A stretch of 35,887 nucleotides of DNA from Trichosphaerium sp. ATCC 40318 (GCA_038496445.1 JALMLS010000396.1:1-35887), one strand, 5' to 3'; shown: positions 2,647 to 26,410, numbered from the stretch's first letter. The notes: generated by a model not told the origin, from the sequence alone. Translations and numbers: made by a program.

Positions 2647-2650
2647 TTTT

Positions 2651-4686: not shown

Positions 4687-4694
4687 AACTGATT

Positions 4695-5870: not shown

Positions 5871-5873
5871 ACT

Positions 5874-7800
5874 TTAACTAATTTTTTAAATTAAAACAAA
5901 ACAATCTGCAAACTCTTCAAAAAAGCATTTAATTTTTTTACATTTAACTTTACTGACGTTTTCTTATATTATCTTAAACCAATTTCTACCAAATATACTG
6001 TTTCTATACTTACTTTATGCATAATATTTTCAAAAGTAGCTACTTATTTACAGCAATATTATCTAAAAAACTTCAGATGCTGCAAACAAAGATAACAACT
6101 GATGATCTGTTGCATCGGCATTTTATTTTTTTGAACATCATTTGTATTAATCTTTGACCTCTATTATTAAATTTAAGGTAGCCTCATCTAAAGACGATCA
6201 AATTTAGCAAAATCTTCAACTCACGAAATTGAGCCAATTCTAATTTTAAATCTTTTGCTAAATATTCATCATTTTACTTTGAGCCATTGACCTACCCTAC
6301 TTACAGATAACCTAAATTAACAGCAGGTCTTACCCTTTTTTAAACAAGTTTGTATCTAAAACAATTTGTCCATCGTAATAGAAATTAAGTTTGTTGGTAT
6401 ATAAGCTGATACATCTCTTCTATAGTTTCTGCTATAGGTAACGCTGTTAAAGTTCTCCTAATCTCTCTACACATGTTCTCATTTTCATAGCGCGTTAAAC
6501 CACAACGCCATACAGCCCAAGATTCACTAATTTTGCGGATCTTTCTAATAAACGAGAATGCAAATAAAAAACATCCCAGGATAAGCTTCTCGTCCTGGAG
6601 GACGACCCAATAAAAGAGATATTTGCTATAAATATTAGCATGCTTACTTAAATCATCATATATAATTAAAGCATCCATACCCAATTCTCTTCAATATTCT
6701 CCTATAGATGTACTACATAAGGAGCTAAATATTGATAACCATTGCTGAACTTGCAGTTGAACATATTAAAGTTACATTCTTCAACAATTTTTCATTTTTA
6801 ATAACATGCTATTCTTTTAACGTTGACATTTTTTGACCTATAGCTACATAAATAGCATTAAAAATACATTTACTGCACCAAATCTTGGCTTTTTCTTCTA
6901 AATTCTCTACTTTGATGTATTATGTATCTAAACAAATTGCTGTTTTTCTGTCTGTCTATCTCCCAAAACTAATTCCCTTTGACTTTTCCTATTGGTACAT
7001 AGAATCTATTGCTTTAACACAGTTTCCAAAGCTTGAGCTATTGATGTTCTTCTTATAATCCTGGAGCTTTTTTCTCAACATATTTAAATTAACTTGCTGA
7101 TAATAATAATTATGATGTTTCACATTGTTTGTAATCTGTAAAATTTTGGATCCTTATGTATTGTAAAAATCTATTTTTATTGATGTACAATTTCTTTACT
7201 ACCAAACTGACCTAATAGATTTCCAACAAACAAAATAAAGGCAAATTTCTTTTGTTTGTTGAGTTTGCATTATAAAGGTAAAACTAAATTACCAGCAATA
7301 AACCATTTGTACTTTGAATAATATTACAGTATTTACTATATGCTTATTCTTCTCCTATAAAGATAAGAATCCCATGTAATATATTCCCATTCCTTAAAAC
7401 TCTAAAAATTTTTCGCCAAATCATCAATTAGTCCATCATACTCAGAATAACTCTCTATAGAATCAAAAACTACAACCCACTACAATTTATATATTTTTTA
7501 ACAACTAAAGATTGACTAAACCATCACCTATAAAACCACTTTTATACGCGCAACGTTCACATTTAAAACTTTACCAGTTCAAAATAAAAAATCACCTATT
7601 TGAATACTATATCTCGTCCGAAAACTAAGATACTATTCTCTTAGCTTCTAAGTTCATAACTACTCCTAAAGTCCTCCATCTGCAAAAACTACTCGCTCAC
7701 CAGCACTCACTTTCATGATTCTATAGCATAAACTACTCATCTGCAACGTAGCTTACTTACCTAAACCATTAAAATGATAAGAAATTACATGATCGTCCAT
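5874..7800 (-). CDS. atp1: atp1, mirror copy
   Basis: Reverse complement of 21257..23183. Confidence 0.95.
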
Positions 7801-7826
7801 TTATTTTATATTTTTTTAATTTTTTT

Positions 7827-8073
7827 AACCGTAATAATATTAAGCCTTTCCATTTTATTAACGCTTTAAAACTATAAAGAACCAAACCCTCCAACAATAT
7901 TGCTCAGTTCAAATATAATAATAAAACAAAAAATAAAATAGTACGTCAGCTAAAATAACTTCTAAACTAAAAAATTCTAATAAGCATAAAATTAAATACA
8001 AAAAAGAGTTACAAAAAAACACATGATAAATTTAATATTCCTCTTCTAATAATAAAATTATACTAAATGACAT
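7827..8073 (-). CDS. nad4L: nad4L-like, mirror copy
   Basis: Reverse complement of 20984..21230. Confidence 0.45.
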
Positions 8074-8079
8074 TTTGTT

Positions 8080-8251
8080 TAACTAGACATACAATTTATT
8101 TACTTGTACATATTTAACATTAATTCATACCTCAATTTTGTTATTTCTGAGATACCTTTAATATAAAAAAAAACACAAAAAATATACTATAAATAAAGTA
8201 AAAAATAATAAAATAATTTCTGTTGAAAAAATAAAATATCTATTGAATCAT
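8080..8251 (-). CDS. atp8: atp8, mirror copy
   Basis: Reverse complement of 20806..20977. Confidence 0.65.
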
Positions 8252-8319
8252 TATATTTTTTCTTTTTTTTTTTATCACTGTAACTTAACACTATTGATAA
8301 ATATAAAGCATATTAAAAA

Positions 8320-9339
8320 CTAAATCACTTTTATTCCATTCAAAAAGTCTGTTCACATATAAACACCTATAAATAAAACTATCAAATAACATCTACAAAA
8401 TGTCAATACAATTAGCAAAAGCAAATCCCTGTAAATACGTGCACTATAACCATATGTAGATATCGACCAAACATACGCACAAAAAAATTCACCGGCTATT
8501 ACATGACAACCATGTAAACCTGTTAACATAAAGATGTACTTCCAAAAACCCGCTGGTTATACTAAAAGGTAATGTAAAATATTCTATCACTGATTAAATA
8601 AAAATAATAATCCAAAAACCAATGTTACCACATAACCCAAATAACATGATAATATTCACGGCGGCTACAGCCATAGTAGCTACCTGACAAATTAAACTGA
8701 ATATAATAATAATAAAGTATTTATCAAAGGTATACAAAAGGCGCTGGGCTACTTATACCACAACCTGGTCATTACCTCCTATTCTAGCTACATAACACAA
8801 ACATAATAAAAAAAAGCGCAAAAAAAGGTACAAAAAACATCATTCCGCAACTAAAAAAAAAATAAAACATATTGTAAGTTTCTTGCTATTACACTGTTCT
8901 ATGACCTAAAATCACTCTCTATCTAAATCACGCCACCAACCATAAACTGATAATAATGACACATTGTACCAAATAAAAATAAACCAGGGCACAATTTTGA
9001 CAATGCATCCACGTAATAGCCCTAAAAATAAAAGTAACGTCCATAACTTAAAAAAAAAGGCCATGGCTAGCATCTACATAATGCCAACGATGCTTTGACG
9101 ATTTTTTATTTTATCACTATATTGCAAATTATAATGTCGTAAACCCCTTTATAATAGTTATTAACAATATCTAGTTTTATTTCTAAATTTATATATCAAA
9201 TAAATAAATCATAAAAAAAATAAATAATATGTCGACATAAAAGCGATATTTCTATATATGCGTTAATATCAACACTTATTAATAATTTTAAATATAATGT
9301 AAATATTTTAAATTCTTCCGCAAATAACCTTTTATCCAT
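8320..9339 (-). CDS. cox3: cox3, mirror copy
   Basis: Reverse complement of 19718..20737. Confidence 0.9.
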
Positions 9340-9375
9340 CAACTTTTTCACTTTTTTATTATAAATTTAAATAAT

Positions 9376-10074
9376 TTAATTAGATAAAAAATCGCTTAAA
9401 TAAAGCACATTAACATTAAGAAAATATAAGCTGTATTGCCGCAACTATAAATTCTAAAATCATAATTAAAACGTCACTACGATTAAAATTGTTTGTAAAT
9501 ATAAGCTATACTCGCATAAAACACTGCGCATAAACATTTAATAATGCGTGCCAGCTAATATATTAGCCATTAAACGCACATGTAGACTAACTACCTTAAA
9601 ATATAAGATACAAACTCTATATTATTAAAATAAAAAGAATTACGCTTTTATTTCCGGTACAAATAAAGTAATAAACCAGTTCGTTTAAAATAAACCTTAA
9701 TAAACCTGCATATATTCAAATTACGCTGCAAAAAAAAATGCAACTGCCCAAAAACTTGTAATTGATAATCTCCGGGTATCATTGCTATTATATTTAAAAA
9801 CAAAATCTCGCGAAAACAACAAAAATGAAAGGTTTAATATTCTTTTATTTTTATTATTTAAAAAACAACCGTTAATTTCCCAGTTACTCCCCAACAAAAT
9901 TAACTATAAATTCAAAAAAACTAAAAGAACCATCCCTAAAACACTTAATTTAAAAAAAATAAACCGTAAAAAAATCCATAAAAAAAAAAACAACTTACCA
10001 AAATAAAAACCAACTTGAAAACACAAACAACCTAAATTATTTACTACGGGATCAAAATGCTCCAAAACTGACAT
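9376..10074 (-). CDS. atp6: atp6, mirror copy
   Basis: Reverse complement of 18983..19681. Confidence 0.9.
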
Positions 10075-10146
10075 CTTTCTCTTTTCTTTACTTCTTTTAT
10101 TTTTTTATTAAAATAAAATTTAAAATAACCCTTTAAATTTTTTTAA

Positions 10147-11852
10147 TTTTATCAGTTACACCTTCCGATACACTACCCTGTTACGAGTTACAGCAATCGC
10201 TGACATAGGTTTTATAGTCCTTTTTTTTATCTTTTCTACTTTTTAATTATCTTTTAAAGCAGGAGATTTACTCAACCGCTTTTAGCTTACGTTAAAAAGA
10301 TAATTTAAATTTAAATTATCTTTTTATTTCTTGCCCTATTTAGTTTATTTTTCATAAAAAGTTGCTTTTCCTAAGAAAACTCTACTTTAAAATACAAACT
10401 TTTTTGATTTTTTTTTTGATTAATTTAAACTACGTCCAGCCACCCAGCTTTCGCTGGGCCACGGCGGTATGTACGAGCGCAGGCAAGTATTCACGCGGTG
10501 TGATGATCCGCGATTACTAGCAATTCATCTTCATATTCCTATTTCAGGGAATATCCGAACAAGAGATTGTTTTATCAGACTAGCGCTAATCACTTATGAA
10601 TAGCATCTTGTTGTACCAACGTTGTATCACATTTGAAGCCAAACCATTAAGGCCATGACGACCAGTCGTCATCACTACTAACTATCATATTGCATGATTT
10701 GCTAAATTGTATTATTATTTTCACTCAATTTCATGGGTACGCCCGTTTATCCAGTAAGGCGACATATCACTACACGAGCTGACGGCGCCATGCAACACCT
10801 GGACCTAAAGTATTCTCTCAATTTTTAATATAAATTTGAAAAAAACCTACTACTTATAAATATAACTTTATCTTGGGGCATATATCTAGGTTTGTAAGAT
10901 TAAACGCGGATCATCAGATAATCAACATGATCCACTGCTGGTAATACACTCCGCCAATTTCTTAGGTTTACATCTTGCGACATATTTCCCCAGGTGAGAT
11001 ATTTACGCGTAAGCTTCACCACCGGTACAAGTCACAAAGGATTTAAAACCTCCTAGATGTCCAGCGCCAAATATCCATCGGTCACAGCGTAGATTACAAG
11101 GGTATCTAATCTTTTCACTCCCTACGCTTTCGATTACTAACGTCTATTCTTTCACAGTACGCGATTGCTCCGCATGATGGTCTTATAAATCTTAGAATTC
11201 TACTCCTAATTTATAATACCACGTACTCAAAAAAATACAAAGACATAAGTTAAATGAGTTATCCTCAGATCAACCCGAGTTTTTTACTCAAAACTTTATG
11301 GACAGTTTACTTCCCTTTACACCAATCAAGATGAGTAGCACTTGGGCCCCCGTGTTACCGCGACTGCTGGCACGAAGTTAGACAGCCTTTCCAATAATTA
11401 CTATCACTATTATCATTATTTCACTGACTTTCGACTCTGCCTTCTTAAGCGAACAATCTTTCTACAACTGTGCTAAATTTAGCCACACGGCATAACTGGA
11501 TCGTGCATTAAACTTGTCCAAAATCCCTCACTGCTGCGCCTTAACGTTCGGGTCATCTCTCCCCGCTGTGCCAGTTTACCCTCTCAGTCCTGGTACGGTC
11601 TTCGGCTAGGTAAGCTTTACCTTAAACCTACTACTTATCATTTACGATACATTCCTATGTGTCAAAAACTCGTATCTCTTTATATAAAAATTATAAATCT
11701 ATTTACTTTATTAAGCTTATTTTGCTTAACATAGCTAGCTAATATCGATTAATACTCACCTTACGGGCATTCTAAATAATATAGAATATTACCTTGCATG
11801 TGTTAAGTCCACATTAGCACTCACTCAGCGCAAAATCATACGCTAACTTTTA
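10147..11852 (-). rRNA. rns: Mitochondrial SSU rRNA, mirror copy
   Basis: Reverse complement of 17205..18910. Confidence 0.95.
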
Positions 11853-11881
11853 CTTGTTTTTACACCAACTACCTTTAATAA

Positions 11882-11952
11882 CGAGCAAATCGGACTTGAA
11901 CCGATATCTGAAAGGCCGACAACTTCTATTTTACCTTTTAAACTATTGGCCC
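11882..11952 (-). tRNA. trnD: tRNA-Asp(GUC), mirror copy
   Basis: Reverse complement of 17105..17175. Confidence 0.87.
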
Positions 11953-11955
11953 TTT

Positions 11956-12025
11956 TTTGGATAGCAGACTCGAACCTGCACTTTTGGCTCCAAAGCCAAC
12001 ACTCTACCTTTTAAGTTATACCCTG
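11956..12025 (-). tRNA. trnP: tRNA-Pro(UGG), mirror copy
   Basis: Reverse complement of 17032..17101. Confidence 0.87.
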
Positions 12026-12031
12026 TTTTTT

Positions 12032-12104
12032 TTTTGGAGGCCGGACTCGAACCGATCTCCTCAAGGGTCATGAGCCTGCGAGCTAACCTATACTCCACTC
12101 CCGA
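12032..12104 (-). tRNA. trnM: Initiator tRNA-Met(CAU), mirror copy
   Basis: Reverse complement of 16953..17025. Confidence 0.85.
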
Positions 12105-12106
12105 TT

Positions 12107-12186
12107 TTTCAGTGACGGGACTTGAACCGCACGTTTTTTCAAACACAAATTTTGAATCTGACGTGTCTACATTCCACCACACTGAC
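12107..12186 (-). tRNA. trnL: tRNA-Leu(CAA), mirror copy
   Basis: Reverse complement of 16871..16950. Confidence 0.88.
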
Positions 12187-12258
12187 TTTTTCAGGCCGGA
12201 CTTGAACCGACATCAAAGATTTTGGAAACCTCTATTTTACCAATTAAACTACTGATAC
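12187..12258 (-). tRNA. trnW: tRNA-Trp(CCA), mirror copy
   Basis: Reverse complement of 16799..16870. Confidence 0.88.
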
Positions 12259-12267
12259 CTTTTTAAC

Positions 12268-12339
12268 TTCGGGCGACAGGCATCGAACTGCAACCTTTGG
12301 GTTAAAAACCCACTGCTCTACCTATTAAGCTACGCCCCC
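12268..12339 (-). tRNA. trnK: tRNA-Lys(UUU), mirror copy
   Basis: Reverse complement of 16718..16789. Confidence 0.88.
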
Positions 12340-12342
12340 TCC

Positions 12343-12424
12343 CTAACGCGGTGGGATTCGAACCACGAAGAGAAAAACTCAATAAATTTACAATCTACTC
12401 CTTTAACCACTTGGATACACGTAC
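12343..12424 (-). tRNA. trnY: tRNA-Tyr(GUA), mirror copy
   Basis: Reverse complement of 16633..16714. Confidence 0.87.
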
Positions 12425-12428
12425 TTTT

Positions 12429-12496
12429 GTTGGGTAGTTGATTCGAACCAACGTAACTTATTCAAAATCAAGCGCCTAACCTCTCGGCATACCCAT
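12429..12496 (-). tRNA. trnQ: tRNA-Gln(UUG), mirror copy
   Basis: Reverse complement of 16561..16628. Confidence 0.85.
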
Positions 12497-12567
12497 TTAG
12501 CCCAGTGGACTCGAACCCACATCTTACAACTTATGAGTTGCTGTTTTTGCCTTTAAACTATAGTTCT
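12497..12567 (-). tRNA. tRNA-CAU (Ile/Met), mirror copy
   Basis: Reverse complement of 16490..16560. Confidence 0.8.
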
Positions 12568-12577
12568 TTAAAAAAAA

Positions 12578-12647
12578 TATCCACGTTGGACTTGAACCAA
12601 CATCGCCGAATTGAAAATACGTATCCTAACCTTTAGACGACGCAGAC
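12578..12647 (-). tRNA. trnE: tRNA-Glu(UUC), mirror copy
   Basis: Reverse complement of 16410..16479. Confidence 0.85.
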
Positions 12648-12649
12648 TT

Positions 12650-12721
12650 TGGCTCGTAACGGAATTGAACCGTTATTACACTATTTGCAATAGTATGGAT
12701 TAACCGTTATCCTAACGAGCC
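12650..12721 (-). tRNA. trnC: tRNA-Cys(GCA), mirror copy
   Basis: Reverse complement of 16336..16407. Confidence 0.93.
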
Positions 12722-12723
12722 TT

Positions 12724-12803
12724 TTTCAGTGACGGGACTTGAACCGCACGTTTTTTCAAACACGAGATCTAAATCCGACGTGTCTACATTCCACCACACT
12801 GAC
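12724..12803 (-). tRNA. trnL: tRNA-Leu(UAG), mirror copy
   Basis: Reverse complement of 16254..16333. Confidence 0.85.
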
Positions 12804-12986
12804 TTTTTTTTCTTTTTTCCTTCTAACAAGGATTTTTTATAGTTGAGATTGCTTTTTTTAAATATAGATGCAGATCGTAGTTTTGTGCATCTATGGAAAT
12901 ATAAACAATCTTTGAGATTGTTTATATTTCCATAGATGCACAAAACTACGATCTGCATCTATATTTAAAAAAAGCAATCTCAAAAA

Positions 12987-13538
12987 GACTCTATTTCCGT
13001 TATATAAGTATAATCTCTCAATAAACTCCCACTTTCTTAGAGTTCTCTGAAAACTTAAATATGAATAAATCCTACCTTCATAAACTTAACAACCAATCAC
13101 TAAATATTTCATACGACACGCAAACCTACGACGTAAATTTCAAAAAATAAGTAACCTTTCATTAATTTATCTTACTTTTATAATCTATAAAATAATACTA
13201 TAATTATATAACCTTAAATTTAACAATACTTTACGCCCATTAAAGTTAATTTTTTTAAAAGACATGTGAGGCTTTAGTTTCTGTTACTAATTCTCTTCAT
13301 CAATTTTCAAATTTCATCAAATTTTATTCATCGATGAAATTCTAAATAAAAAAAGAAATAAAACCACATGCAAAGAAAATATTCAAGAAATACAAAATTA
13401 AATATACTTATTTTAAATAATTTAAAACATTATATAAAAATCTATTGCATTTTGTATAAATTTATTTATATTTTTTTCAAAACGTTTTGAAAACTATACA
13501 AATTTTAATACCTTTTTCACGACGTCACTAATACGCAT
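12987..13538 (-). CDS. rps7: rps7-like, mirror copy
   Basis: Reverse complement of 15519..16070. Confidence 0.4.
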
Positions 13539-14666
13539 CCTCTTATTTCAACGTTTTTTATTTCTTACTTTTTTTTTTGTTGTTAAATATACTTCTTTAT
13601 TTTTTATTTTTATATTTTGCCAGCTTTTAGTGGTAATAATAGACGCTTGTTTTTTATTTCCTATTAGTATTATTATTTTTTTCTTTTTTTTTTTTCTTTT
13701 TTTTTTGCTTTTGATTTTAATTTTTTTATTTTTATTGTTATTTTTTGCAAGTTTATTTCTTTTTTTTCTTTTATCTGATCTTTTTCACAATTTATTAATT
13801 TTACTTTTATTTTTTTTACCCTTTTTTTTGTTTTACTTTTATAAAGCTGCGTATTAAACAAAAATAAATGTAAAAGCTCACGCGATTTCTGTTCGAAAAA
13901 AAAAGAGTAATATAATCTTATTAAGTTATATTACTCTTTTTTTTTCGAACTCTTTTTAAATACCCATCTTATTTAATTTTTTGTTAATATTACTAAACTA
14001 GTACCATAACTTCTTTTATACATTAATTTTGTCCATAAACTTATAACGCCATAATTTTTTAAAAATCACGCATTCATATTTATATTATTACGCGATTTTT
14101 TACCTCTATTTTTTTTTATATTAAACCTACACCTTTTATTAATCTATTAATTTATTATAAAACATGTATGTATATATTGTTTTAATTTATCTAAACTTTA
14201 TATTTATAATCACTTCTCGCTAAATTTAACCTTCACGGCTCTTTTTTAAAAAATTAAACCTACATTTGTTTGAAAAATATTTCCTATCTTTTATTTAAAA
14301 TAAATTAGATAATATACTCTTTTTTCTCTTCTTTTTCAAAATCTATCCACTAAACGCATTGACCTATTTCACGCATGCGTTTAGTGGATAATACACTTAC
14401 CTTTACTAAAATAATTTGAATATACCAAAGGCAATTTATTTTTGATAAACTTTTATATTTAAATTTTTTACACTAAACTTTCTTTTAATACCCTAAAATA
14501 AACAAAAGATCGGCTTTTAAGATACCTATAGGTATCTTAAAAGCCGATCTTTTGTTTATTTTAGGGTATTAAAAGAAAGTTTAGTGTAAAAAATTTAAAT
14601 ATAAAAGTTTATCAAAAATAAATTGCCTTTGGTATATTCAAATTATTTTAGTAAAGGTAAGTGTAT

Positions 14667-14713
14667 TATCCACTAAACGCATGCGTGAAATAGGTCAATG
14701 CGTTTAGTGGATA
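14667..14713. repeat. Hairpin, 16-bp arms, 15-nt loop (mirror 14344..14390)
   Basis: tatccactaaacgcat ... atgcgtttagtggata. Confidence 0.9.
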
Positions 14714-15106
14714 GATTTTGAAAAAGAAGAGAAAAAAGAGTATATTATCTAATTTATTTTAAATAAAAGATAGGAAATATTTTTCAAACAAATGTAGGTT
14801 TAATTTTTTAAAAAAGAGCCGTGAAGGTTAAATTTAGCGAGAAGTGATTATAAATATAAAGTTTAGATAAATTAAAACAATATATACATACATGTTTTAT
14901 AATAAATTAATAGATTAATAAAAGGTGTAGGTTTAATATAAAAAAAAATAGAGGTAAAAAATCGCGTAATAATATAAATATGAATGCGTGATTTTTAAAA
15001 AATTATGGCGTTATAAGTTTATGGACAAAATTAATGTATAAAAGAAGTTATGGTACTAGTTTAGTAATATTAACAAAAAATTAAATAAGATGGGTATTTA
15101 AAAAGA

Positions 15107-15166
15107 GTTCGAAAAAAAAAGAGTAATATAACTTAATAAGATTATATTACTCTTTTTTTTTCGAAC
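15107..15166. repeat. Hairpin, 25-bp arms (mirror 13891..13950)
   Basis: gttcgaaaaaaaaagagtaatataa ... ttatattactctttttttttcgaac. Confidence 0.92.
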
Positions 15167-15518
15167 AGAAATCGCGTGAGCTTTTACATTTATTTTTGTT
15201 TAATACGCAGCTTTATAAAAGTAAAACAAAAAAAAGGGTAAAAAAAATAAAAGTAAAATTAATAAATTGTGAAAAAGATCAGATAAAAGAAAAAAAAGAA
15301 ATAAACTTGCAAAAAATAACAATAAAAATAAAAAAATTAAAATCAAAAGCAAAAAAAAAAAGAAAAAAAAAAAGAAAAAAATAATAATACTAATAGGAAA
15401 TAAAAAACAAGCGTCTATTATTACCACTAAAAGCTGGCAAAATATAAAAATAAAAAATAAAGAAGTATATTTAACAACAAAAAAAAAAGTAAGAAATAAA
15501 AAACGTTGAAATAAGAGG

Positions 15519-16070
15519 ATGCGTATTAGTGACGTCGTGAAAAAGGTATTAAAATTTGTATAGTTTTCAAAACGTTTTGAAAAAAATATAAATAAATTTA
15601 TACAAAATGCAATAGATTTTTATATAATGTTTTAAATTATTTAAAATAAGTATATTTAATTTTGTATTTCTTGAATATTTTCTTTGCATGTGGTTTTATT
15701 TCTTTTTTTATTTAGAATTTCATCGATGAATAAAATTTGATGAAATTTGAAAATTGATGAAGAGAATTAGTAACAGAAACTAAAGCCTCACATGTCTTTT
15801 AAAAAAATTAACTTTAATGGGCGTAAAGTATTGTTAAATTTAAGGTTATATAATTATAGTATTATTTTATAGATTATAAAAGTAAGATAAATTAATGAAA
15901 GGTTACTTATTTTTTGAAATTTACGTCGTAGGTTTGCGTGTCGTATGAAATATTTAGTGATTGGTTGTTAAGTTTATGAAGGTAGGATTTATTCATATTT
16001 AAGTTTTCAGAGAACTCTAAGAAAGTGGGAGTTTATTGAGAGATTATACTTATATAACGGAAATAGAGTC
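15519..16070 (+). CDS. rps7: Probable ribosomal protein S7 (frameshifted cryptogene, divergent)
   Basis: Reconstructed segments NKFI..., KLKPHMSFKKINFNGRKVLL (cf. xKPxVEVKxRRVGGxxYQVP) and a C-terminal EGRIYSY..K match S7 motif order. Similarity is weak. Confidence 0.45.
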
Positions 16071-16073
16071 TTT

Positions 16074-16214
16074 TTGAGATTGCTTTTTTTAAATATAGAT
16101 GCAGATCGTAGTTTTGTGCATCTATGGAAATATAAACAATCTCAAAGATTGTTTATATTTCCATAGATGCACAAAACTACGATCTGCATCTATATTTAAA
16201 AAAAGCAATCTCAA
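16074..16214. repeat. Long hairpin, ~69-bp arms, 3-nt loop, with nested hairpins (mirror 12843..12983)
   Basis: ttgagattgc...aacaatct caa agattgtt...gcaatctcaa. Each arm contains an internal atagatgca...tgcatctat stem. Confidence 0.95.
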
Positions 16215-16253
16215 CTATAAAAAATCCTTGTTAGAAGGAAAAAAGAAAAAAAA

Positions 16254-16333
16254 GTCAGTGTGGTGGAATGTAGACACGTCGGATTTAGATCTCGTGTTTG
16301 AAAAAACGTGCGGTTCAAGTCCCGTCACTGAAA
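16254..16333 (+). tRNA. trnL: tRNA-Leu(UAG)
   Basis: Type II cloverleaf, loop tttagat. T-stem is one G short (gcgg[g]/cccgt). G1xA72 mismatch. Confidence 0.85.
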
Positions 16334-16335
16334 AA

Positions 16336-16407
16336 GGCTCGTTAGGATAACGGTTAATCCATACTATTGCAAATAGTGTAATAACGGTTCAATTCCGTTA
16401 CGAGCCA
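16336..16407 (+). tRNA. trnC: tRNA-Cys(GCA)
   Basis: Complete cloverleaf: ggctcgt/acgagcc acceptor, loop ttgcaaa, T-arm aacgg-ttcaatt-ccgtt. Confidence 0.95.
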
Positions 16408-16409
16408 AA

Positions 16410-16479
16410 GTCTGCGTCGTCTAAAGGTTAGGATACGTATTTTCAATTCGGCGATGTTGGTTCAAGTCCAACGTGGATA
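16410..16479 (+). tRNA. trnE: tRNA-Glu(UUC)
   Basis: Loop ttttcaa. The 3' acceptor strand needs one extra C (ccaac[c]gtggat) to pair with gtctgcg. Confidence 0.85.
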
Positions 16480-16489
16480 TTTTTTTTAA

Positions 16490-16560
16490 AGAACTATAGT
16501 TTAAAGGCAAAAACAGCAACTCATAAGTTGTAAGATGTGGGTTCGAGTCCACTGGGCTAA
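16490..16560 (+). tRNA. tRNA with CAU anticodon (Ile-lysidine type or elongator Met)
   Basis: Anticodon arm gcaac/tcataa/gttgt has only a 6-nt loop. T-stem gtggg/[c]ccac. Acceptor positions 1-4 pair poorly. Confidence 0.8.
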
Positions 16561-16628
16561 ATGGGTATGCCGAGAGGTTAGGCGCTTGATTTTGAATAAG
16601 TTACGTTGGTTCGAATCAACTACCCAAC
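16561..16628 (+). tRNA. trnQ: tRNA-Gln(UUG)
   Basis: Acceptor atgggta/tacccaa, loop ttttgaa. About three single nucleotides are missing (position 9, anticodon stem, T-stem). Confidence 0.85.
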
Positions 16629-16632
16629 AAAA

Positions 16633-16714
16633 GTACGTGTATCCAAGTGGTTAAAGGAGTAGATTGTAAATTTATTGAGTTTTTCTCTTCGTGGTTCGAA
16701 TCCCACCGCGTTAG
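16633..16714 (+). tRNA. trnY: tRNA-Tyr(GUA)
   Basis: gtaga/ttgtaaa/tttat arm and long variable arm. T-stem gtgg[g]/cccac. Acceptor pairs 1-2 mismatched. Confidence 0.88.
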
Positions 16715-16717
16715 GGA

Positions 16718-16789
16718 GGGGGCGTAGCTTAATAGGTAGAGCAGTGGGTTTTTAACCCAAAGGTTGCAGTTCGATGCCTGTCGCCCGAA
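16718..16789 (+). tRNA. trnK: tRNA-Lys(UUU)
   Basis: gtggg/tttttaa/cccaa arm. T-stem gcag[g]/cctgt. Acceptor pairs 1-2 mismatched. Confidence 0.9.
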
Positions 16790-16798
16790 GTTAAAAAG

Positions 16799-16870
16799 GT
16801 ATCAGTAGTTTAATTGGTAAAATAGAGGTTTCCAAAATCTTTGATGTCGGTTCAAGTCCGGCCTGAAAAA
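16799..16870 (+). tRNA. trnW: tRNA-Trp(CCA)
   Basis: gaggt/ttccaaa/atctt arm, canonical D and T arms. Acceptor pairs 1 and 3 mismatched. Confidence 0.9.
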
Positions 16871-16950
16871 GTCAGTGTGGTGGAATGTAGACACGTCAGA
16901 TTCAAAATTTGTGTTTGAAAAAACGTGCGGTTCAAGTCCCGTCACTGAAA
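16871..16950 (+). tRNA. trnL: tRNA-Leu(CAA)
   Basis: Near-identical to tRNA-Leu(UAG) except the anticodon arm tcaga/ttcaaaa/tttgt. Confidence 0.9.
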
Positions 16951-16952
16951 AA

Positions 16953-17025
16953 TCGGGAGTGGAGTATAGGTTAGCTCGCAGGCTCATGACCCTTGAGGAG
17001 ATCGGTTCGAGTCCGGCCTCCAAAA
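16953..17025 (+). tRNA. trnM: Initiator tRNA-Met(CAU)
   Basis: Loop ctcatga. One G duplication (cag[g]g/ccctt) restores the three G-C pairs typical of initiator tRNAs. Confidence 0.85.
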
Positions 17026-17031
17026 AAAAAA

Positions 17032-17101
17032 CAGGGTATAACTTAAAAGGTAGAGTGTTGGCTTTGGAGCCAAAAGTGCAGGTTCGAGTCTGCTATCCAA
17101 A
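17032..17101 (+). tRNA. trnP: tRNA-Pro(UGG)
   Basis: ttggc/tttgga/gccaa arm with a 6-nt loop (needs tttgg[g]a). T-stem one base short. Acceptor pairs 1-2 mismatched. Confidence 0.88.
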
Positions 17102-17104
17102 AAA

Positions 17105-17175
17105 GGGCCAATAGTTTAAAAGGTAAAATAGAAGTTGTCGGCCTTTCAGATATCGGTTCAAGTCCGATTTGCTCG
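17105..17175 (+). tRNA. trnD: tRNA-Asp(GUC)
   Basis: gaag[g]/ttgtcgg/ccttt arm. Acceptor gggccaa/ttg[g]ctc with G discriminator. Confidence 0.88.
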
Positions 17176-17204
17176 TTATTAAAGGTAGTTGGTGTAAAAA
17201 CAAG

Positions 17205-18910
17205 TAAAAGTTAGCGTATGATTTTGCGCTGAGTGAGTGCTAATGTGGACTTAACACATGCAAGGTAATATTCTATATTATTTAGAATGCCCGTAAGGTG
17301 AGTATTAATCGATATTAGCTAGCTATGTTAAGCAAAATAAGCTTAATAAAGTAAATAGATTTATAATTTTTATATAAAGAGATACGAGTTTTTGACACAT
17401 AGGAATGTATCGTAAATGATAAGTAGTAGGTTTAAGGTAAAGCTTACCTAGCCGAAGACCGTACCAGGACTGAGAGGGTAAACTGGCACAGCGGGGAGAG
17501 ATGACCCGAACGTTAAGGCGCAGCAGTGAGGGATTTTGGACAAGTTTAATGCACGATCCAGTTATGCCGTGTGGCTAAATTTAGCACAGTTGTAGAAAGA
17601 TTGTTCGCTTAAGAAGGCAGAGTCGAAAGTCAGTGAAATAATGATAATAGTGATAGTAATTATTGGAAAGGCTGTCTAACTTCGTGCCAGCAGTCGCGGT
17701 AACACGGGGGCCCAAGTGCTACTCATCTTGATTGGTGTAAAGGGAAGTAAACTGTCCATAAAGTTTTGAGTAAAAAACTCGGGTTGATCTGAGGATAACT
17801 CATTTAACTTATGTCTTTGTATTTTTTTGAGTACGTGGTATTATAAATTAGGAGTAGAATTCTAAGATTTATAAGACCATCATGCGGAGCAATCGCGTAC
17901 TGTGAAAGAATAGACGTTAGTAATCGAAAGCGTAGGGAGTGAAAAGATTAGATACCCTTGTAATCTACGCTGTGACCGATGGATATTTGGCGCTGGACAT
18001 CTAGGAGGTTTTAAATCCTTTGTGACTTGTACCGGTGGTGAAGCTTACGCGTAAATATCTCACCTGGGGAAATATGTCGCAAGATGTAAACCTAAGAAAT
18101 TGGCGGAGTGTATTACCAGCAGTGGATCATGTTGATTATCTGATGATCCGCGTTTAATCTTACAAACCTAGATATATGCCCCAAGATAAAGTTATATTTA
18201 TAAGTAGTAGGTTTTTTTCAAATTTATATTAAAAATTGAGAGAATACTTTAGGTCCAGGTGTTGCATGGCGCCGTCAGCTCGTGTAGTGATATGTCGCCT
18301 TACTGGATAAACGGGCGTACCCATGAAATTGAGTGAAAATAATAATACAATTTAGCAAATCATGCAATATGATAGTTAGTAGTGATGACGACTGGTCGTC
18401 ATGGCCTTAATGGTTTGGCTTCAAATGTGATACAACGTTGGTACAACAAGATGCTATTCATAAGTGATTAGCGCTAGTCTGATAAAACAATCTCTTGTTC
18501 GGATATTCCCTGAAATAGGAATATGAAGATGAATTGCTAGTAATCGCGGATCATCACACCGCGTGAATACTTGCCTGCGCTCGTACATACCGCCGTGGCC
18601 CAGCGAAAGCTGGGTGGCTGGACGTAGTTTAAATTAATCAAAAAAAAAATCAAAAAAGTTTGTATTTTAAAGTAGAGTTTTCTTAGGAAAAGCAACTTTT
18701 TATGAAAAATAAACTAAATAGGGCAAGAAATAAAAAGATAATTTAAATTTAAATTATCTTTTTAACGTAAGCTAAAAGCGGTTGAGTAAATCTCCTGCTT
18801 TAAAAGATAATTAAAAAGTAGAAAAGATAAAAAAAAGGACTATAAAACCTATGTCAGCGATTGCTGTAACTCGTAACAGGGTAGTGTATCGGAAGGTGTA
18901 ACTGATAAAA
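17205..18910 (+). rRNA. rns: Mitochondrial small-subunit rRNA
   Basis: Universal motifs: taacacatgcaag, gtgccagcagtcgcggtaa, gattagataccc, gtcagctcgtg, gaattgctagtaatcgcg, tcgtaacagggtag. Ends approximate. Confidence 0.97.
18731..18764. repeat. 34-bp perfect palindrome inside the SSU rRNA expansion
   Basis: taaaaagataatttaaatttaaattatcttttta. Confidence 0.9.
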
Positions 18911-18982
18911 TTAAAAAAATTTAAAGGGTTATTTTAAATTTTATTTTAATAAAAAAATAAAAGAAGTAAAGAAAAGAGAAAG

Positions 18983-19681
18983 ATGTCAGTTTTGGAGCAT
19001 TTTGATCCCGTAGTAAATAATTTAGGTTGTTTGTGTTTTCAAGTTGGTTTTTATTTTGGTAAGTTGTTTTTTTTTTTATGGATTTTTTTACGGTTTATTT
19101 TTTTTAAATTAAGTGTTTTAGGGATGGTTCTTTTAGTTTTTTTGAATTTATAGTTAATTTTGTTGGGGAGTAACTGGGAAATTAACGGTTGTTTTTTAAA
19201 TAATAAAAATAAAAGAATATTAAACCTTTCATTTTTGTTGTTTTCGCGAGATTTTGTTTTTAAATATAATAGCAATGATACCCGGAGATTATCAATTACA
19301 AGTTTTTGGGCAGTTGCATTTTTTTTTGCAGCGTAATTTGAATATATGCAGGTTTATTAAGGTTTATTTTAAACGAACTGGTTTATTACTTTATTTGTAC
19401 CGGAAATAAAAGCGTAATTCTTTTTATTTTAATAATATAGAGTTTGTATCTTATATTTTAAGGTAGTTAGTCTACATGTGCGTTTAATGGCTAATATATT
19501 AGCTGGCACGCATTATTAAATGTTTATGCGCAGTGTTTTATGCGAGTATAGCTTATATTTACAAACAATTTTAATCGTAGTGACGTTTTAATTATGATTT
19601 TAGAATTTATAGTTGCGGCAATACAGCTTATATTTTCTTAATGTTAATGTGCTTTATTTAAGCGATTTTTTATCTAATTAA
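18983..19681 (+). CDS. atp6: ATP synthase subunit a (cryptogene)
   Basis: MSVLEHFD start. Reconstructed IEFVSYI..VVSLHVRLMANILAGHALL and LEFIVAAIQAYIF. Multiple single-base gaps. Confidence 0.93.
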
Positions 19682-19717
19682 ATTATTTAAATTTATAATA
19701 AAAAAGTGAAAAAGTTG

Positions 19718-20737
19718 ATGGATAAAAGGTTATTTGCGGAAGAATTTAAAATATTTACATTATATTTAAAATTATTAATAAGTGTTGATATTAACGCATA
19801 TATAGAAATATCGCTTTTATGTCGACATATTATTTATTTTTTTTATGATTTATTTATTTGATATATAAATTTAGAAATAAAACTAGATATTGTTAATAAC
19901 TATTATAAAGGGGTTTACGACATTATAATTTGCAATATAGTGATAAAATAAAAAATCGTCAAAGCATCGTTGGCATTATGTAGATGCTAGCCATGGCCTT
20001 TTTTTTTAAGTTATGGACGTTACTTTTATTTTTAGGGCTATTACGTGGATGCATTGTCAAAATTGTGCCCTGGTTTATTTTTATTTGGTACAATGTGTCA
20101 TTATTATCAGTTTATGGTTGGTGGCGTGATTTAGATAGAGAGTGATTTTAGGTCATAGAACAGTGTAATAGCAAGAAACTTACAATATGTTTTATTTTTT
20201 TTTTAGTTGCGGAATGATGTTTTTTGTACCTTTTTTTGCGCTTTTTTTTATTATGTTTGTGTTATGTAGCTAGAATAGGAGGTAATGACCAGGTTGTGGT
20301 ATAAGTAGCCCAGCGCCTTTTGTATACCTTTGATAAATACTTTATTATTATTATATTCAGTTTAATTTGTCAGGTAGCTACTATGGCTGTAGCCGCCGTG
20401 AATATTATCATGTTATTTGGGTTATGTGGTAACATTGGTTTTTGGATTATTATTTTTATTTAATCAGTGATAGAATATTTTACATTACCTTTTAGTATAA
20501 CCAGCGGGTTTTTGGAAGTACATCTTTATGTTAACAGGTTTACATGGTTGTCATGTAATAGCCGGTGAATTTTTTTGTGCGTATGTTTGGTCGATATCTA
20601 CATATGGTTATAGTGCACGTATTTACAGGGATTTGCTTTTGCTAATTGTATTGACATTTTGTAGATGTTATTTGATAGTTTTATTTATAGGTGTTTATAT
20701 GTGAACAGACTTTTTGAATGGAATAAAAGTGATTTAG
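19718..20737 (+). CDS. cox3: Cytochrome c oxidase subunit 3 (cryptogene; conserved part starts ~19955, possible N-terminal extension from 19718)
   Basis: Reconstructed HRWHYVDASPWP, GWWRDLDRE, FMLTGLHGCHV, YWHFVDVIW (W=TGA). Confidence 0.93.
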
Positions 20738-20805
20738 TTTTTAATATGCTTTATATTTATCAATAGTGTTAAGTTACAGTGATAAAAAAAAAAAGAAAAA
20801 ATATA

Positions 20806-20977
20806 ATGATTCAATAGATATTTTATTTTTTCAACAGAAATTATTTTATTATTTTTTACTTTATTTATAGTATATTTTTTGTGTTTTTTTTTATATTAAA
20901 GGTATCTCAGAAATAACAAAATTGAGGTATGAATTAATGTTAAATATGTACAAGTAAATAAATTGTATGTCTAGTTA
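20806..20977 (+). CDS. atp8: ATP synthase subunit 8 (cryptogene)
   Basis: MIQ[L/I]D start (cf. MPQLD), one hydrophobic segment, then ISEITKLR (cf. ISxILKLR). Confidence 0.7.
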
Positions 20978-20983
20978 AACAAA

Positions 20984-21230
20984 ATGTCATTTAGTATAAT
21001 TTTATTATTAGAAGAGGAATATTAAATTTATCATGTGTTTTTTTGTAACTCTTTTTTGTATTTAATTTTATGCTTATTAGAATTTTTTAGTTTAGAAGTT
21101 ATTTTAGCTGACGTACTATTTTATTTTTTGTTTTATTATTATATTTGAACTGAGCAATATTGTTGGAGGGTTTGGTTCTTTATAGTTTTAAAGCGTTAAT
21201 AAAATGGAAAGGCTTAATATTATTACGGTT
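20984..21230 (+). CDS. nad4L: Probable NADH dehydrogenase subunit 4L (cryptogene)
   Basis: Short hydrophobic frame with R-x-N-I-L, FNF and TEAILL..LVL (cf. AESAIGLAILV). Confidence 0.5.
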
Positions 21231-21256
21231 AAAAAAATTAAAAAAATATAAAATAA

Positions 21257-23183
21257 ATGGACGATCATGTAATTTCTTATCATTTTAATGGTTTAGGTAA
21301 GTAAGCTACGTTGCAGATGAGTAGTTTATGCTATAGAATCATGAAAGTGAGTGCTGGTGAGCGAGTAGTTTTTGCAGATGGAGGACTTTAGGAGTAGTTA
21401 TGAACTTAGAAGCTAAGAGAATAGTATCTTAGTTTTCGGACGAGATATAGTATTCAAATAGGTGATTTTTTATTTTGAACTGGTAAAGTTTTAAATGTGA
21501 ACGTTGCGCGTATAAAAGTGGTTTTATAGGTGATGGTTTAGTCAATCTTTAGTTGTTAAAAAATATATAAATTGTAGTGGGTTGTAGTTTTTGATTCTAT
21601 AGAGAGTTATTCTGAGTATGATGGACTAATTGATGATTTGGCGAAAAATTTTTAGAGTTTTAAGGAATGGGAATATATTACATGGGATTCTTATCTTTAT
21701 AGGAGAAGAATAAGCATATAGTAAATACTGTAATATTATTCAAAGTACAAATGGTTTATTGCTGGTAATTTAGTTTTACCTTTATAATGCAAACTCAACA
21801 AACAAAAGAAATTTGCCTTTATTTTGTTTGTTGGAAATCTATTAGGTCAGTTTGGTAGTAAAGAAATTGTACATCAATAAAAATAGATTTTTACAATACA
21901 TAAGGATCCAAAATTTTACAGATTACAAACAATGTGAAACATCATAATTATTATTATCAGCAAGTTAATTTAAATATGTTGAGAAAAAAGCTCCAGGATT
22001 ATAAGAAGAACATCAATAGCTCAAGCTTTGGAAACTGTGTTAAAGCAATAGATTCTATGTACCAATAGGAAAAGTCAAAGGGAATTAGTTTTGGGAGATA
22101 GACAGACAGAAAAACAGCAATTTGTTTAGATACATAATACATCAAAGTAGAGAATTTAGAAGAAAAAGCCAAGATTTGGTGCAGTAAATGTATTTTTAAT
22201 GCTATTTATGTAGCTATAGGTCAAAAAATGTCAACGTTAAAAGAATAGCATGTTATTAAAAATGAAAAATTGTTGAAGAATGTAACTTTAATATGTTCAA
22301 CTGCAAGTTCAGCAATGGTTATCAATATTTAGCTCCTTATGTAGTACATCTATAGGAGAATATTGAAGAGAATTGGGTATGGATGCTTTAATTATATATG
22401 ATGATTTAAGTAAGCATGCTAATATTTATAGCAAATATCTCTTTTATTGGGTCGTCCTCCAGGACGAGAAGCTTATCCTGGGATGTTTTTTATTTGCATT
22501 CTCGTTTATTAGAAAGATCCGCAAAATTAGTGAATCTTGGGCTGTATGGCGTTGTGGTTTAACGCGCTATGAAAATGAGAACATGTGTAGAGAGATTAGG
22601 AGAACTTTAACAGCGTTACCTATAGCAGAAACTATAGAAGAGATGTATCAGCTTATATACCAACAAACTTAATTTCTATTACGATGGACAAATTGTTTTA
22701 GATACAAACTTGTTTAAAAAAGGGTAAGACCTGCTGTTAATTTAGGTTATCTGTAAGTAGGGTAGGTCAATGGCTCAAAGTAAAATGATGAATATTTAGC
22801 AAAAGATTTAAAATTAGAATTGGCTCAATTTCGTGAGTTGAAGATTTTGCTAAATTTGATCGTCTTTAGATGAGGCTACCTTAAATTTAATAATAGAGGT
22901 CAAAGATTAATACAAATGATGTTCAAAAAAATAAAATGCCGATGCAACAGATCATCAGTTGTTATCTTTGTTTGCAGCATCTGAAGTTTTTTAGATAATA
23001 TTGCTGTAAATAAGTAGCTACTTTTGAAAATATTATGCATAAAGTAAGTATAGAAACAGTATATTTGGTAGAAATTGGTTTAAGATAATATAAGAAAACG
23101 TCAGTAAAGTTAAATGTAAAAAAATTAAATGCTTTTTTGAAGAGTTTGCAGATTGTTTTGTTTTAATTTAAAAAATTAGTTAA
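21257..23183 (+). CDS. atp1: ATP synthase F1 alpha subunit (cryptogene, large internal insertion)
   Basis: Reconstructed [88 protein letters not shown]. Confidence 0.97.
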
Positions 23184-23186
23184 AGT

Positions 23187-24362
23187 ATGTTGCTAAAGCA
23201 GAATCTACGGGGAAAGAGGTCTTTAAGCGTGTAAAGCCGCATGTAACAATAGAACTATAGGGCACGTAGATCATGGTAAACAACGTTAACATCAGCAATA
23301 ACTCAGGTATTATCGTTTTATACAGAACTAAAATTTTAATTATGATGAAATTGATAAAACTCCAGAAGAAAGGCGCGTGGGATTACTATAAACGCATTAC
23401 ATGTGAATATGAAACGGAAACAGACATTATACACATGTTGATTGCCCAGGACATCAGATTTTATGAAGAATATGATAATAGGAGCAATCCAGATGACGGA
23501 GTTATTTTAGTAGTAGCTTGACAGATGGTCCTCAAGAACAAACAAGGGACATATAATATTAATAAGTCAAGTAGGTATTAAAAATTTGGTGCTTTTTTTA
23601 ATAAATTAGATGCTATATTGACCCGAATTTAAAAGATTTAGTATCTTTGGAAACTTAGAGCTTTTAGAAACTTATGTTATGAAGATGTACCTTTCTCTGT
23701 GGGATCGGCGCATGAGCTATGAACGAAGTGGAAGAAAAGGGTTTTTCAGAAAATGGCATAAAAGTGTAAAAGAATTAATGCGCTAATAGATGAAAAAATA
23801 CCTTTACAGTTAGAAATAAAGATGATCGTTTATAATGCCTATAGAAGATGTTTATACAATTCAGGTCGAGGTACTGTAGTATCGGATGCATAGAACAAGG
23901 TATTGTAAAAAGTGTCAAGATTTGGAATTGGTAGGTTCTGATGTAATAAAAACAACATGTTACGTGTAGAAATGTTTCATAAATAATGAACGATGCTATG
24001 GCGGGTGAAAATGTTGGGTTTTAATAAAAGTGTAAAAAGAAAACAAGTTATACGAGAATGGTTTTATGTGATTTAAAAGCGTTGTGCCTAAAAATGAATT
24101 TAGAGCGCAGTCTATATTTTGACAAGAAAAGAGGGAGGAAGAAAAAACCATTTAGTTCTGTTTTCAACCTCAATTTTTTTTTAGAACATCTAATGTTACG
24201 GGACAATAAAGGTTTTAAATGAGGATGAAGTAATTTTACCTGGGCAAATGAAAAAATAGAGTAAAGTTGATGTCTAAAGTTGCGTTAAATGAAAATTACA
24301 ATTTACAATAAGAGAAGGACAAATACAGTAGGTAAGGAAAAATAATAGAAATAATTAAGTAA
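23187..24362 (+). CDS. tufA: Elongation factor Tu (cryptogene)
   Basis: Reconstructed [30 protein letters not shown][K/R]ARGITIN, RHYTHVDCPGH, QMDGVILVV, NKLD, SGRGTVV, FTIREG. Confidence 0.97.
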
Positions 24363-24370
24363 AATCAGTT

Positions 24371-25480
24371 ATGTGGAAAAGTAATAAATTACAAAAGTAG
24401 CATATGAGTTTGGATTGGTTATAGAGCACATCTAATTTAAGTTATAATTGAAGTTATGGTGGGTAGCGTTAATTTTTTTATTAATTCAATATTAACGGGT
24501 GTATTATTAGCGGCAATATATACGCAGGTGATTTTGAAGGTCTTTAAATGTAATTATGCGTGAAGTTTACGAAGGTGATGATTAAGATTAGCTCATGTAC
24601 ATGGTGCTGTATGTTTTTTTTTGTTGTTTATATTCATATGCTAAGGGGATTGTTTATAGTTCTTATTTATATCCTAGACACATTTATGAATGTCAGGAGT
24701 ATTAGTATTGTTAGTAATGTATTTACTGCTTTATTAGTTATATTTTACCTTGAGTCAAATGAGCTATTGAGCTACCATTATTATATTATATCTAATAGAT
24801 GTTTTCCAGGGTGAAAGAAGAAATTTTTCCTTTTGTTATGGGAGGTTTTCTTTTAGTCATGAAATGTTATACAGATGTTTTAGTTTACATTATTTTTTTA
24901 GCTTTTTTTTATTAGGTTTAGTTTTGTGCATTTAATTTTATTACATGAAACTGGTCGACAAATAATACAGAGGAGATGGATTTATAGATTCGGTAGCTTT
25001 GGTGTATATTTTTTAATAAAAGATTTATATGTGTTTTTTTAGTTATAGGTGTTTATGGTTATATGTATTTTCATGATCTTATGCAACATGTATGAAAATA
25101 TGATTTTGGCAAACATTATGTGACGCCAAGATTAATAAAACCAGAATGTATTTTTTGCCTTTTTATGTATGATAAAATTGGTTTATAATAAAAATTTAGG
25201 TTGTTACATTTAGCTTGTGCCATAGGTTGTTTGTTAGGCTTGGTTTTTTGGGCCGTAGTGAATTGAAAGGGTTTATTTTGATATTATAGGAAAAACATAT
25301 GTATGTTTTTAGCTTGTAACTTAGTTGATTTAGCGTATGTTCGGGTGAAACTATGCGTTATCCTTGATCTTGTAATTTAATGAAAGCTTAATTATTTATT
25401 ATTTAGGTTTTTAGTTTTATATATAGTATGTAGTAGATCATGATCTACTATAATAATTAAAATATTAAAAAGTAAAATAA
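24371..25480 (+). CDS. cob: Apocytochrome b (cryptogene)
   Basis: Reconstructed PSNLSYNWSYG, YIHMLRGL, GYILPWGQMSYWA, KPEWYFLPFY. 3' end approximate. Confidence 0.96.
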
Positions 25481-25656
25481 TAAATAATATTCCTTTTTTT
25501 TTAGAAAAATTATTTAAAAAAACTAAAATAGTGCTTTTAAATAATTTTTATGTATTTAGCGAATCTGTTCAATGAACTTTAGAAGATTTTAGAGAACAAT
25601 TAGAGTTAGATTTTGCTATGTTTAATGATTATCTTGAAAAAAAAAAAAAAAAATAA

Positions 25657-26406: not shown

Positions 26407-26410
26407 AAAA

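Follow-up and report, generated by a model that had tools for sequence, protein, structure and literature searches.

Do mitochondrial transfer RNA (tRNA) genes that lack letters of the cloverleaf give rise to complete RNAs, and if so, where do the missing letters come from? This question is raised by a cluster of 12 tRNA units at positions 16254-17177 (+ strand) of a 35,887-nt stretch of DNA from Trichosphaerium sp. ATCC 40318 (GCA_038496445.1 JALMLS010000396.1:1-35887), hereafter called the window, which is mitochondrial DNA. The units lie in the order Leu(UAG), Cys, Glu, CAU, Gln, Tyr, Lys, Trp, Leu(CAA), initiator-type Met, Pro and Asp; the two leucine units are called Leu-1 and Leu-2 and the initiator-type unit Met-i. 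A preliminary description had claimed that 10 of the 12 fold canonically only after the addition of a base identical to its neighbor, had proposed 11 such insertions and had placed them at the level of RNA. We give a probability of roughly 85% to the reading that 10 of these tRNAs undergo insertional RNA editing at about 21 fixed places, each inserted letter being a copy of its neighbor, with stutter of the polymerase during transcription as the simplest route.

Ten of the 12 tRNA units are predicted to need inserted letters

On the DNA as it stands, ARAGORN recognized 4 of the 12 tRNAs (Cys, Trp, Met and Asp) in each of the two copies of the cluster that the window holds. The Rfam tRNA model matched all 12 units, and Cys and Trp were the only two that aligned with no model position deleted. 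The Rfam gathering score of 29 bits was not reached by six of the units, namely, Glu, CAU, Gln, Leu-1, Tyr and Met-i. This is in good agreement with the earlier claim that 10 of the 12 tRNAs need added bases and that Cys and Trp need none.

We analyzed the units with a cloverleaf threading scorer in which every insertion was tried, either restricted to copies of a neighboring letter or with free choice of the base. One insertion gained 0 to 2 points in Cys and at most 7 in Trp, and one to three insertions gained 13 to 60 points in nine of the other 10 tRNAs. The gain was only 7 points in Met-i, where the G predicted in the anticodon stem could not be scored because the variable loop of the scorer is limited to 4 to 5 letters; scored by hand, this G adds 5 points in the arm. 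All 11 insertions proposed earlier were reproduced, namely, the T-stem G of Leu-1, Leu-2, Tyr, and Lys, the T-stem C of Gln and CAU, the letters completing the six-letter loops of Pro and CAU, the acceptor C of Glu, the acceptor G of Asp, and the anticodon-stem G of Met-i. The set was nevertheless incomplete, as about 10 more are needed, for a total of about 21.

The comparison of a tRNA detector before and after the insertions, which the preliminary description had also put forward, came out in the same direction. The number of tRNAs recognized by ARAGORN rose from 4 to 9 with the 11 insertions proposed earlier and to all 12 with eight more copies (19 in total), these being the D-loop G19 of both Leu-1 and Leu-2, the anticodon-stem C of Glu, the acceptor G of CAU, a letter at position 9/10 and the anticodon-stem T of Gln, the T-stem C of Pro, and the anticodon-stem G of Asp. 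As a control, 300 random sets of 18 neighbor copies allowed ARAGORN to recognize 1 to 6 tRNAs. With free choice of both base and place, the 17 insertions of highest gain included 15 neighbor copies. Random loss of letters would give about 54% neighbor copies, and 18 of 18 would then have a probability of about 1e-5.

Overall, the site model (Table 1) holds about 21 single-letter neighbor copies in 10 tRNAs, of which about 11 are G, 6 are C, 1 is T, and 3 are of uncertain place (most likely T or G). The modeled copies would restore T-stems, G53, the G18-G19 of the D-loop, seven-letter anticodon loops, anticodon stems, and acceptor stems, and without the extra letters these RNAs would be unable to fold as a cloverleaf. 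As substrates, tRNAs are the best constrained, since base pairing names the missing letter without any argument from reading frames, and they show the process at work on untranslated RNA. The earlier argument that the tRNAs exclude ribosomal frameshifting as the sole explanation, no codons having to be considered, is thus supported. Two-thirds of these genes escape tRNA finders, so that the annotation of such genomes needs RNA data.

Table 1. Features of the window, with the copies predicted for each tRNA (listed in gene order) and their detection scores (threading points are given before and after insertion)
Feature	Position	Strand	Predicted neighbor copies	No. of copies	Rfam (bits)	Threading	ARAGORN
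tRNA-Leu(UAG), Leu-1, class II cryptogene	16254..16333	+	G in run 16312-16313 (T-stem); G after 16270 (D-loop G19); one more by paralogy with Leu-2	3	25.0	36 to 55 with T-stem G	
tRNA-Cys(GCA), complete in DNA, unedited	16336..16407	+	none	0	61.2		match on DNA
tRNA-Glu(UUC) cryptogene	16410..16479	+	C after 16436 (anticodon stem); C at 16472 (first base of 3' acceptor strand)	2	28.2, two deleted model positions	36 to 70	
tRNA with anticodon CAU (elongator Met or Ile), cryptogene	16490..16559	+	C at 16520 (giving a 7-letter anticodon loop); C in run 16549-16550 (T-stem); G in run 16554-16556 (acceptor)	3	27.7, three deleted positions	13 to 66	match only with all three copies
tRNA-Gln(UUG) cryptogene	16561..16628	+	G at 16569 or T at 16568 (position 9/10); T at 16597 (anticodon stem); C at 16617 (T-stem)	3	27.0, three deleted positions	13 to 70	match after copies
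tRNA-Tyr(GUA), class II cryptogene	16635..16711	+	G in run 16693-16694 (T-stem)	1	22.2	34 to 54	match after one copy
tRNA-Lys(UUU) cryptogene	16718..16788	+	G at 16769 (T-stem)	1	G53 absent from alignment	39 to 64	match after one copy
tRNA-Trp(CCA), probably unedited	16799..16870	+	none	0	48.9, gap-free		match on DNA
tRNA-Leu(CAA), Leu-2, paralog of Leu-1, three RNA insertions	16871..16950	+	one within 16866-16887 (T at 16872 or 16886); G right after 16887 (D-loop G19); G in run 16929-16930 (T-stem)	3		41 to 60 with T-stem G	
Initiator-type tRNA-Met(CAU), Met-i, cryptogene	16953..17025	+	G in run 16981-16982 (giving three G-C pairs adjoining the anticodon loop)	1	19.7		anticodon position 33 before copy, 34 after
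tRNA-Pro(UGG) cryptogene	17032..17101	+	one letter in six-letter anticodon loop (G in run 17066-17067 for UGG); C at 17090 (T-stem)	2	alignment with 6-letter loop and T-arm gap	7 to 67	Pro(tgg) after copies
tRNA-Asp(GUC) cryptogene	17103..17177	+	G at 17134 (anticodon stem); G at 17171 (acceptor)	2		53 to 77	match on DNA
Whole 12-tRNA cluster, mirror copy (exact reverse complement)	11880..12803	-					
Small-subunit (SSU) ribosomal RNA (rRNA), mitochondrial type, directly downstream of tRNA cluster	17206-18630	+			401.8 (RF00177)		
SSU rRNA, mirror copy	10427-11851						

RNA-derived contigs carry the extra letters

Parts of the window are contained in 20 public runs, four of which (X1, X3, X5 and X11) were aligned on positions 16200-18700, all of them as contigs. 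RNA-derived contigs carry extra letters, probable DNA-derived contigs do not, and tRNA-Cys is untouched. In X5, whose pieces all aligned with zero substitutions, positions 16409-16887 are represented by 490 letters on 479 bases (11 insertions), positions 16866-16952, in Leu-2, by 90 letters on 87 bases (contig 26, 3 insertions), and positions 16968-17222 by 260 letters on 255 bases (contig 27, 5 insertions, four of which are accounted for by Pro and Asp). Over Cys, the X5 contig spanning 16312-16436 had 0 gaps and 0 other letters. In X11, which is recorded as an RNA-Seq library, contig 10 has exactly two insertions over 17090-17226, and 16617-17062 shows 10 gap letters with a net gain of 4, which we read as the gain of 7 letters and the loss of 3. 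The three absent window letters may sit in A-run spacers and may represent a strain difference or an RNA deletion.

Given the 7-in and 3-out reading of X11, the site model calls for 11, 3, 5, 2, and 7 insertions in the five contig pieces, which are the numbers counted. Trp is probably unedited, since these counts are already reached with zero sites in Trp and since its threading gain is at most 7.

Some sites can be placed more closely. The contigs overlap by exactly 30 letters, as shown by the unedited pieces of X1, and this fixed overlap allows clipped contig ends to locate insertions. X5 contig 24 starts with 6 non-fitting letters just before 16312, which puts an insertion within 16306-16313, in the T-stem of Leu-1. 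It ends at 16436 with 2 non-fitting letters, and the overlapping contig 25 is free of substitutions, which puts an insertion directly after 16436, in Glu. Contig 25 in turn ends at 16887 with 7 non-fitting letters, which places an insertion directly after that position, in the D-loop of Leu-2, and the 30-letter overlap requires a further insertion in 16866-16887. The locations after 16436, after 16887 and within 16306-16313 are all predicted sites.

In the SSU rRNA, which acts as the positive control of the RNA data, the inserted letters themselves could be read. The 12 best-supported of 82 rows of insertions, all of them in rRNA, comprise 7 G, 3 C, 1 A, and 1 T; these 12 were found in X5, X11, and X1 and were missing from X3. 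Every one of the 12 is a copy of the next base; 9 occur where the run is a single letter, and the runs at the other sites do not exceed 3 letters. At nearly all 12, the depth with the insertion equals the total depth in X5 and X11, bearing in mind that contigs drop rare variants and that X1 has unedited contigs. About 40 insertions were found in the SSU region as a whole. The choice of sites is selective, since only 5 of the 56 single G's in 18262-18618 are edited, and no motif was seen around the edited sites.

The earlier claim of restoration at the RNA level by neighbor copying is therefore supported, with extra letters in X5 and X11 and none in X3; for the tRNAs, we infer the sites and the copy rule from structure and from the matching counts, three sites being fixed by contig ends.

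The short form is found in a probable DNA run

X3, a marine metagenome that is probably DNA, comes from a diverged strain with scattered substitutions and has none of the 12 best-supported rRNA insertions. The X3 contig that covers 16411-16895 has 14 letters fewer than the window. Assembly error is unlikely, as this strain is without any of the extra letters. The substitutions listed for X3 in the tRNA cluster fall six times in spacers and three times in the initiator tRNA (16955, 17001 and 17016), with none listed for the other tRNAs; at 17016, the change of G to A turns a U.G pair in the T-stem of Met-i into U-A.

X1, which is probably the source sample, holds both forms. It includes an unedited contig over 16306-16895 with 0 gaps and an even depth of about 1100, together with edited rRNA pieces whose depth reaches about 100,000 near the 3' end. 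A loose end in X1 is a template-switch oligonucleotide, so X1 is complementary DNA (cDNA), and its unedited part would then represent carried-over mitochondrial DNA. Parts of the window occur in many marine and other metagenomes (X3, X7, X10, X18, X19, and others), in runs labeled with several organisms, and this spread suggests a widespread, possibly host-associated or contaminating, protist.

Proposed route and points that weigh against it

The 12 tRNA genes are apparently transcribed together, as single contigs take in several of them along with the spacers. The RNA would then gain one nucleotide, repeating the neighboring encoded base, at each of about 21 fixed places in 10 tRNAs. The precedent of the heterolobosean amoeba BB2, described below, and the edited multi-tRNA contigs both point to insertion during or right after transcription, and the simplest route would be for the mitochondrial RNA polymerase to transcribe a single base of the template twice at specified sites. 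That the inserted base equals its neighbor fits such a re-copying of a template base. Moreover, insertion would seem to come earlier than the excision of the tRNAs, given that contigs covering six tRNAs plus the spacers between them are already edited in full. Edited contigs of this kind suggest insertion before tRNA processing, as polymerase stutter predicts, and a stutter acting during transcription is thus the mechanism that we consider probable.

Several points weigh against this reading. First, the letter-by-letter reading of insertions covers rRNA, to which the best 12 of the 82 rows belong. Second, the tRNA evidence consists of multi-tRNA contigs rather than mature tRNAs, and from contigs the span of a single molecule cannot be proved. 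Third, the assignment of X5 to RNA and of X3 to DNA is a guess from the index. Fourth, X1 is a cDNA run that holds unedited contigs of the tRNA cluster, so that unedited transcripts are possible. Fifth, the match between model and counts is one of consistency, since the model was refined after the counts were known and the agreement is no independent test. Finally, acceptor mismatches are left over after the model insertions, namely, G1.A72 in Leu, G1.A72 and A3.A70 in Trp, C2.A71 and G3.A70 in Met-i, C1.A72 and A2.A71 in Pro, and A3.G70 and A4.G69 in CAU. A separate 5' repair of acceptor positions 1 to 3 is possible. The mismatched 5' positions 1 to 3 face A-rich 3' acceptor strands that lead into poly-A spacers. 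The acceptors of Leu and Gln would become perfect if the T at position 2 were copied and the tRNA began one base later.

Other explanations

The alternative that survives best, although we regard it as unlikely, is a templated insertion after transcription, directed either by the partner strand of the stem, as in Acanthamoeba-type editing, or by guide RNAs in a kinetoplastid-like manner. In Acanthamoeba-type 5' tRNA editing, the first three 5' nucleotides are replaced with the 3' strand as the template, and neither loops, T-stems nor rRNAs receive insertions. Most of the tRNA sites inferred here lie in stems, where a partner strand could specify the base. Several tRNAs are also mismatched at positions 1 to 3, and those of Leu, Trp, Met-i, and Pro look like substrates of 5' tRNA editing. 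However, contig ends place one insertion after 16887 in a D-loop, one after 16436 in an anticodon stem, and one within 16306-16313 in a T-stem, and stem-templated repair cannot explain sites that have no pairing partner, such as the D-loop G19 after 16887 and those in the anticodon loops of CAU and Pro. Furthermore, the rRNA follows the same copy rule, and neither a partner strand nor a guide would force the inserted base to equal its neighbor. The multi-tRNA contigs, spacers included, are already fully edited. The leftover acceptor mismatches leave room for a second, separate editing system beside the insertions.

A sequencing artefact, in which the assembler under-called homopolymers and the DNA encodes complete tRNAs that the RNA simply matches, is very improbable. 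The missing letters do always adjoin an identical one, the pattern that under-calling of homopolymers leaves behind, and the odd, perfect palindrome of the window (see below) could hint at assembly problems. Nevertheless, independent contigs from public runs repeat the short form, both the gap-free X1 contig and those of X3, and the runs affected are 1 to 3 letters long, whereas under-calling strikes long runs and not a lone G. About 70 runs of at least 6 A or T lie on this arm of the palindrome; none of them is in the stretch with the 12 best-supported insertions, where runs reach at most 4 letters.

Just as improbable is a second, complete DNA copy elsewhere, on another mitochondrial molecule or in the nucleus, which would be the one transcribed. 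The mitochondrial genome lies in several assembly pieces and X1 holds both rRNA forms, as such a copy would have it. However, the depth in X3 is 0 at each of the 12 best-supported insertions even though its contigs cover the sites, and the long form is confined to RNA-type runs and to X1, a cDNA run in which its depth is very high and 3'-biased.

Least probable of all is that the genes are decaying pseudogenes in a mitochondrion that imports cytosolic tRNAs, because, although 8 of the 12 go unrecognized by ARAGORN and six are under the Rfam threshold, the damage consists of single missing letters only with all other conserved tRNA features intact, the diverged strain in X3 keeps the same short forms with its listed cluster substitutions mostly in spacers, and the RNA has the compensating letters.

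Comparison with known editing systems

Editing by insertion of neighbor copies has been published for a single organism, the heterolobosean amoeba BB2, in which 475 single-nucleotide insertions, 84% of them G, always stand next to an identical encoded base (Yang et al. 2017, PMC5421314). In BB2, messenger RNAs (mRNAs), rRNAs, and 12 of 25 tRNAs are edited with high efficiency, restoring GUUC, acceptor stems, and seven-letter anticodon loops, and its authors proposed polymerase stutter (PMC5421314). The system described here resembles it in its single insertions that match a neighbor and are mostly G, in its occurrence in rRNA and tRNAs, in the restoration of GUUC, acceptor stems, and anticodon loops, and in the apparent presence of a very large inverted repeat. 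This matches BB2-type insertional editing by neighbor copying, of which it would be a further case of the same kind.

The two systems differ in density and in composition. BB2 has 12 insertions in 12 of 25 tRNAs, one in each and none of them C, whereas here about 21 are predicted in 10 of 12 tRNAs, with up to 3 in one tRNA and about one-third of them C. This amounts to about 1 site per 42 bases of tRNA compared to about 1 per 150 in BB2, which is about four times denser. In the SSU rRNA, BB2 has 18 sites compared to the approximately 40 insertions in the SSU region here. G predominates in both, although its share here (7 of the 12 best-supported of 82 rows in rRNA and 11 of 18 modeled tRNA sites) is below the 84% of BB2. 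We found no later paper on a second organism with the neighbor-copy rule; the ascetosporean case concerns substitution editing only. A second and much denser case provides a comparison set for the mechanism and for the site code.

In the Pro anticodon loop, TTTGGA at 17063-17068, copying a G would give Pro(UGG), and copying the preceding C or a T would give Gln(UUG). The place of the insertion therefore sets the identity of the tRNA, a Gln(UUG) gene being already present at 16561-16628. We consider it possible, yet rather doubtful, that the organism is unrelated to BB2 and that insertional editing by neighbor copying arose at least twice, here reaching about 1 site per 42 bases even in tRNAs and with the choice of copy in the Pro loop deciding between Pro(UGG) and a second Gln(UUG).

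Two other systems share features with the present one. The letters added in Physarum are mostly C, along with some U and dinucleotides, and do not repeat a neighbor. Here, the 12 best-supported of 82 rows each show a single letter identical to the next base, with C in just 3 of them. The likeness to the myxomycetes Physarum and Didymium lies in dense single insertions, about 1 per 25 to 30 bases, which affect mRNAs, rRNAs, and tRNAs, restore stems and GUUC, and are made during transcription (summarized in part in PMC5421314). Viral and bacterial stutter differs in that it needs a slippery run made up of several equal bases and gives mixed products, whereas here most sites are single bases and editing appears essentially complete in the contigs. 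In paramyxovirus P, ebolavirus GP, and bacterial slippage, the polymerase adds an extra G or A that repeats a template base.

Genomic context

The window is AT-rich (20 to 39% G+C) and contains a perfect palindrome, with arms at 2412-14528 and 14529-26645 that are 100% complementary, 12,117 bases long each and separated by no spacer. The tRNA cluster and the SSU rRNA are therefore present twice, a position p on the + arm corresponding to 29057 minus p on the other arm. Beyond the arms, the palindrome, centered at 14528/14529, carries on as far as about 270 and 28784, interrupted by small breaks. It may represent either a genuine mitochondrial molecule of hairpin-like or inverted-repeat form or a chimera that arose during amplification. 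The mitochondrial genome of BB2 has a 49-kb inverted repeat (PMC5421314).

Exact patterns of the Trp and Cys tRNAs gave zero matches in JGI metagenome contigs, GTDB genome contigs, and IMG/VR. A 63-residue frame predicted from the edited Tyr-Lys stretch gave zero candidates when queried against a protein collection, and an open reading frame of the window had no entry in the contig index. Matches to Rfam microRNA families at 16075-16213 and 28512-28597 were rejected as spurious, being long perfect hairpins rather than microRNAs. Indeed, long perfect local hairpins lie at 16093-16195, 28512-28597, and 34362-34682, one of them about 60 bases upstream of the tRNA cluster; they might act as a promoter, an origin, or a processing signal. 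The window also carries fragments of atp1, cob, and cox3, which are broken by frameshifts, and its longest open reading frame has at most 159 codons.

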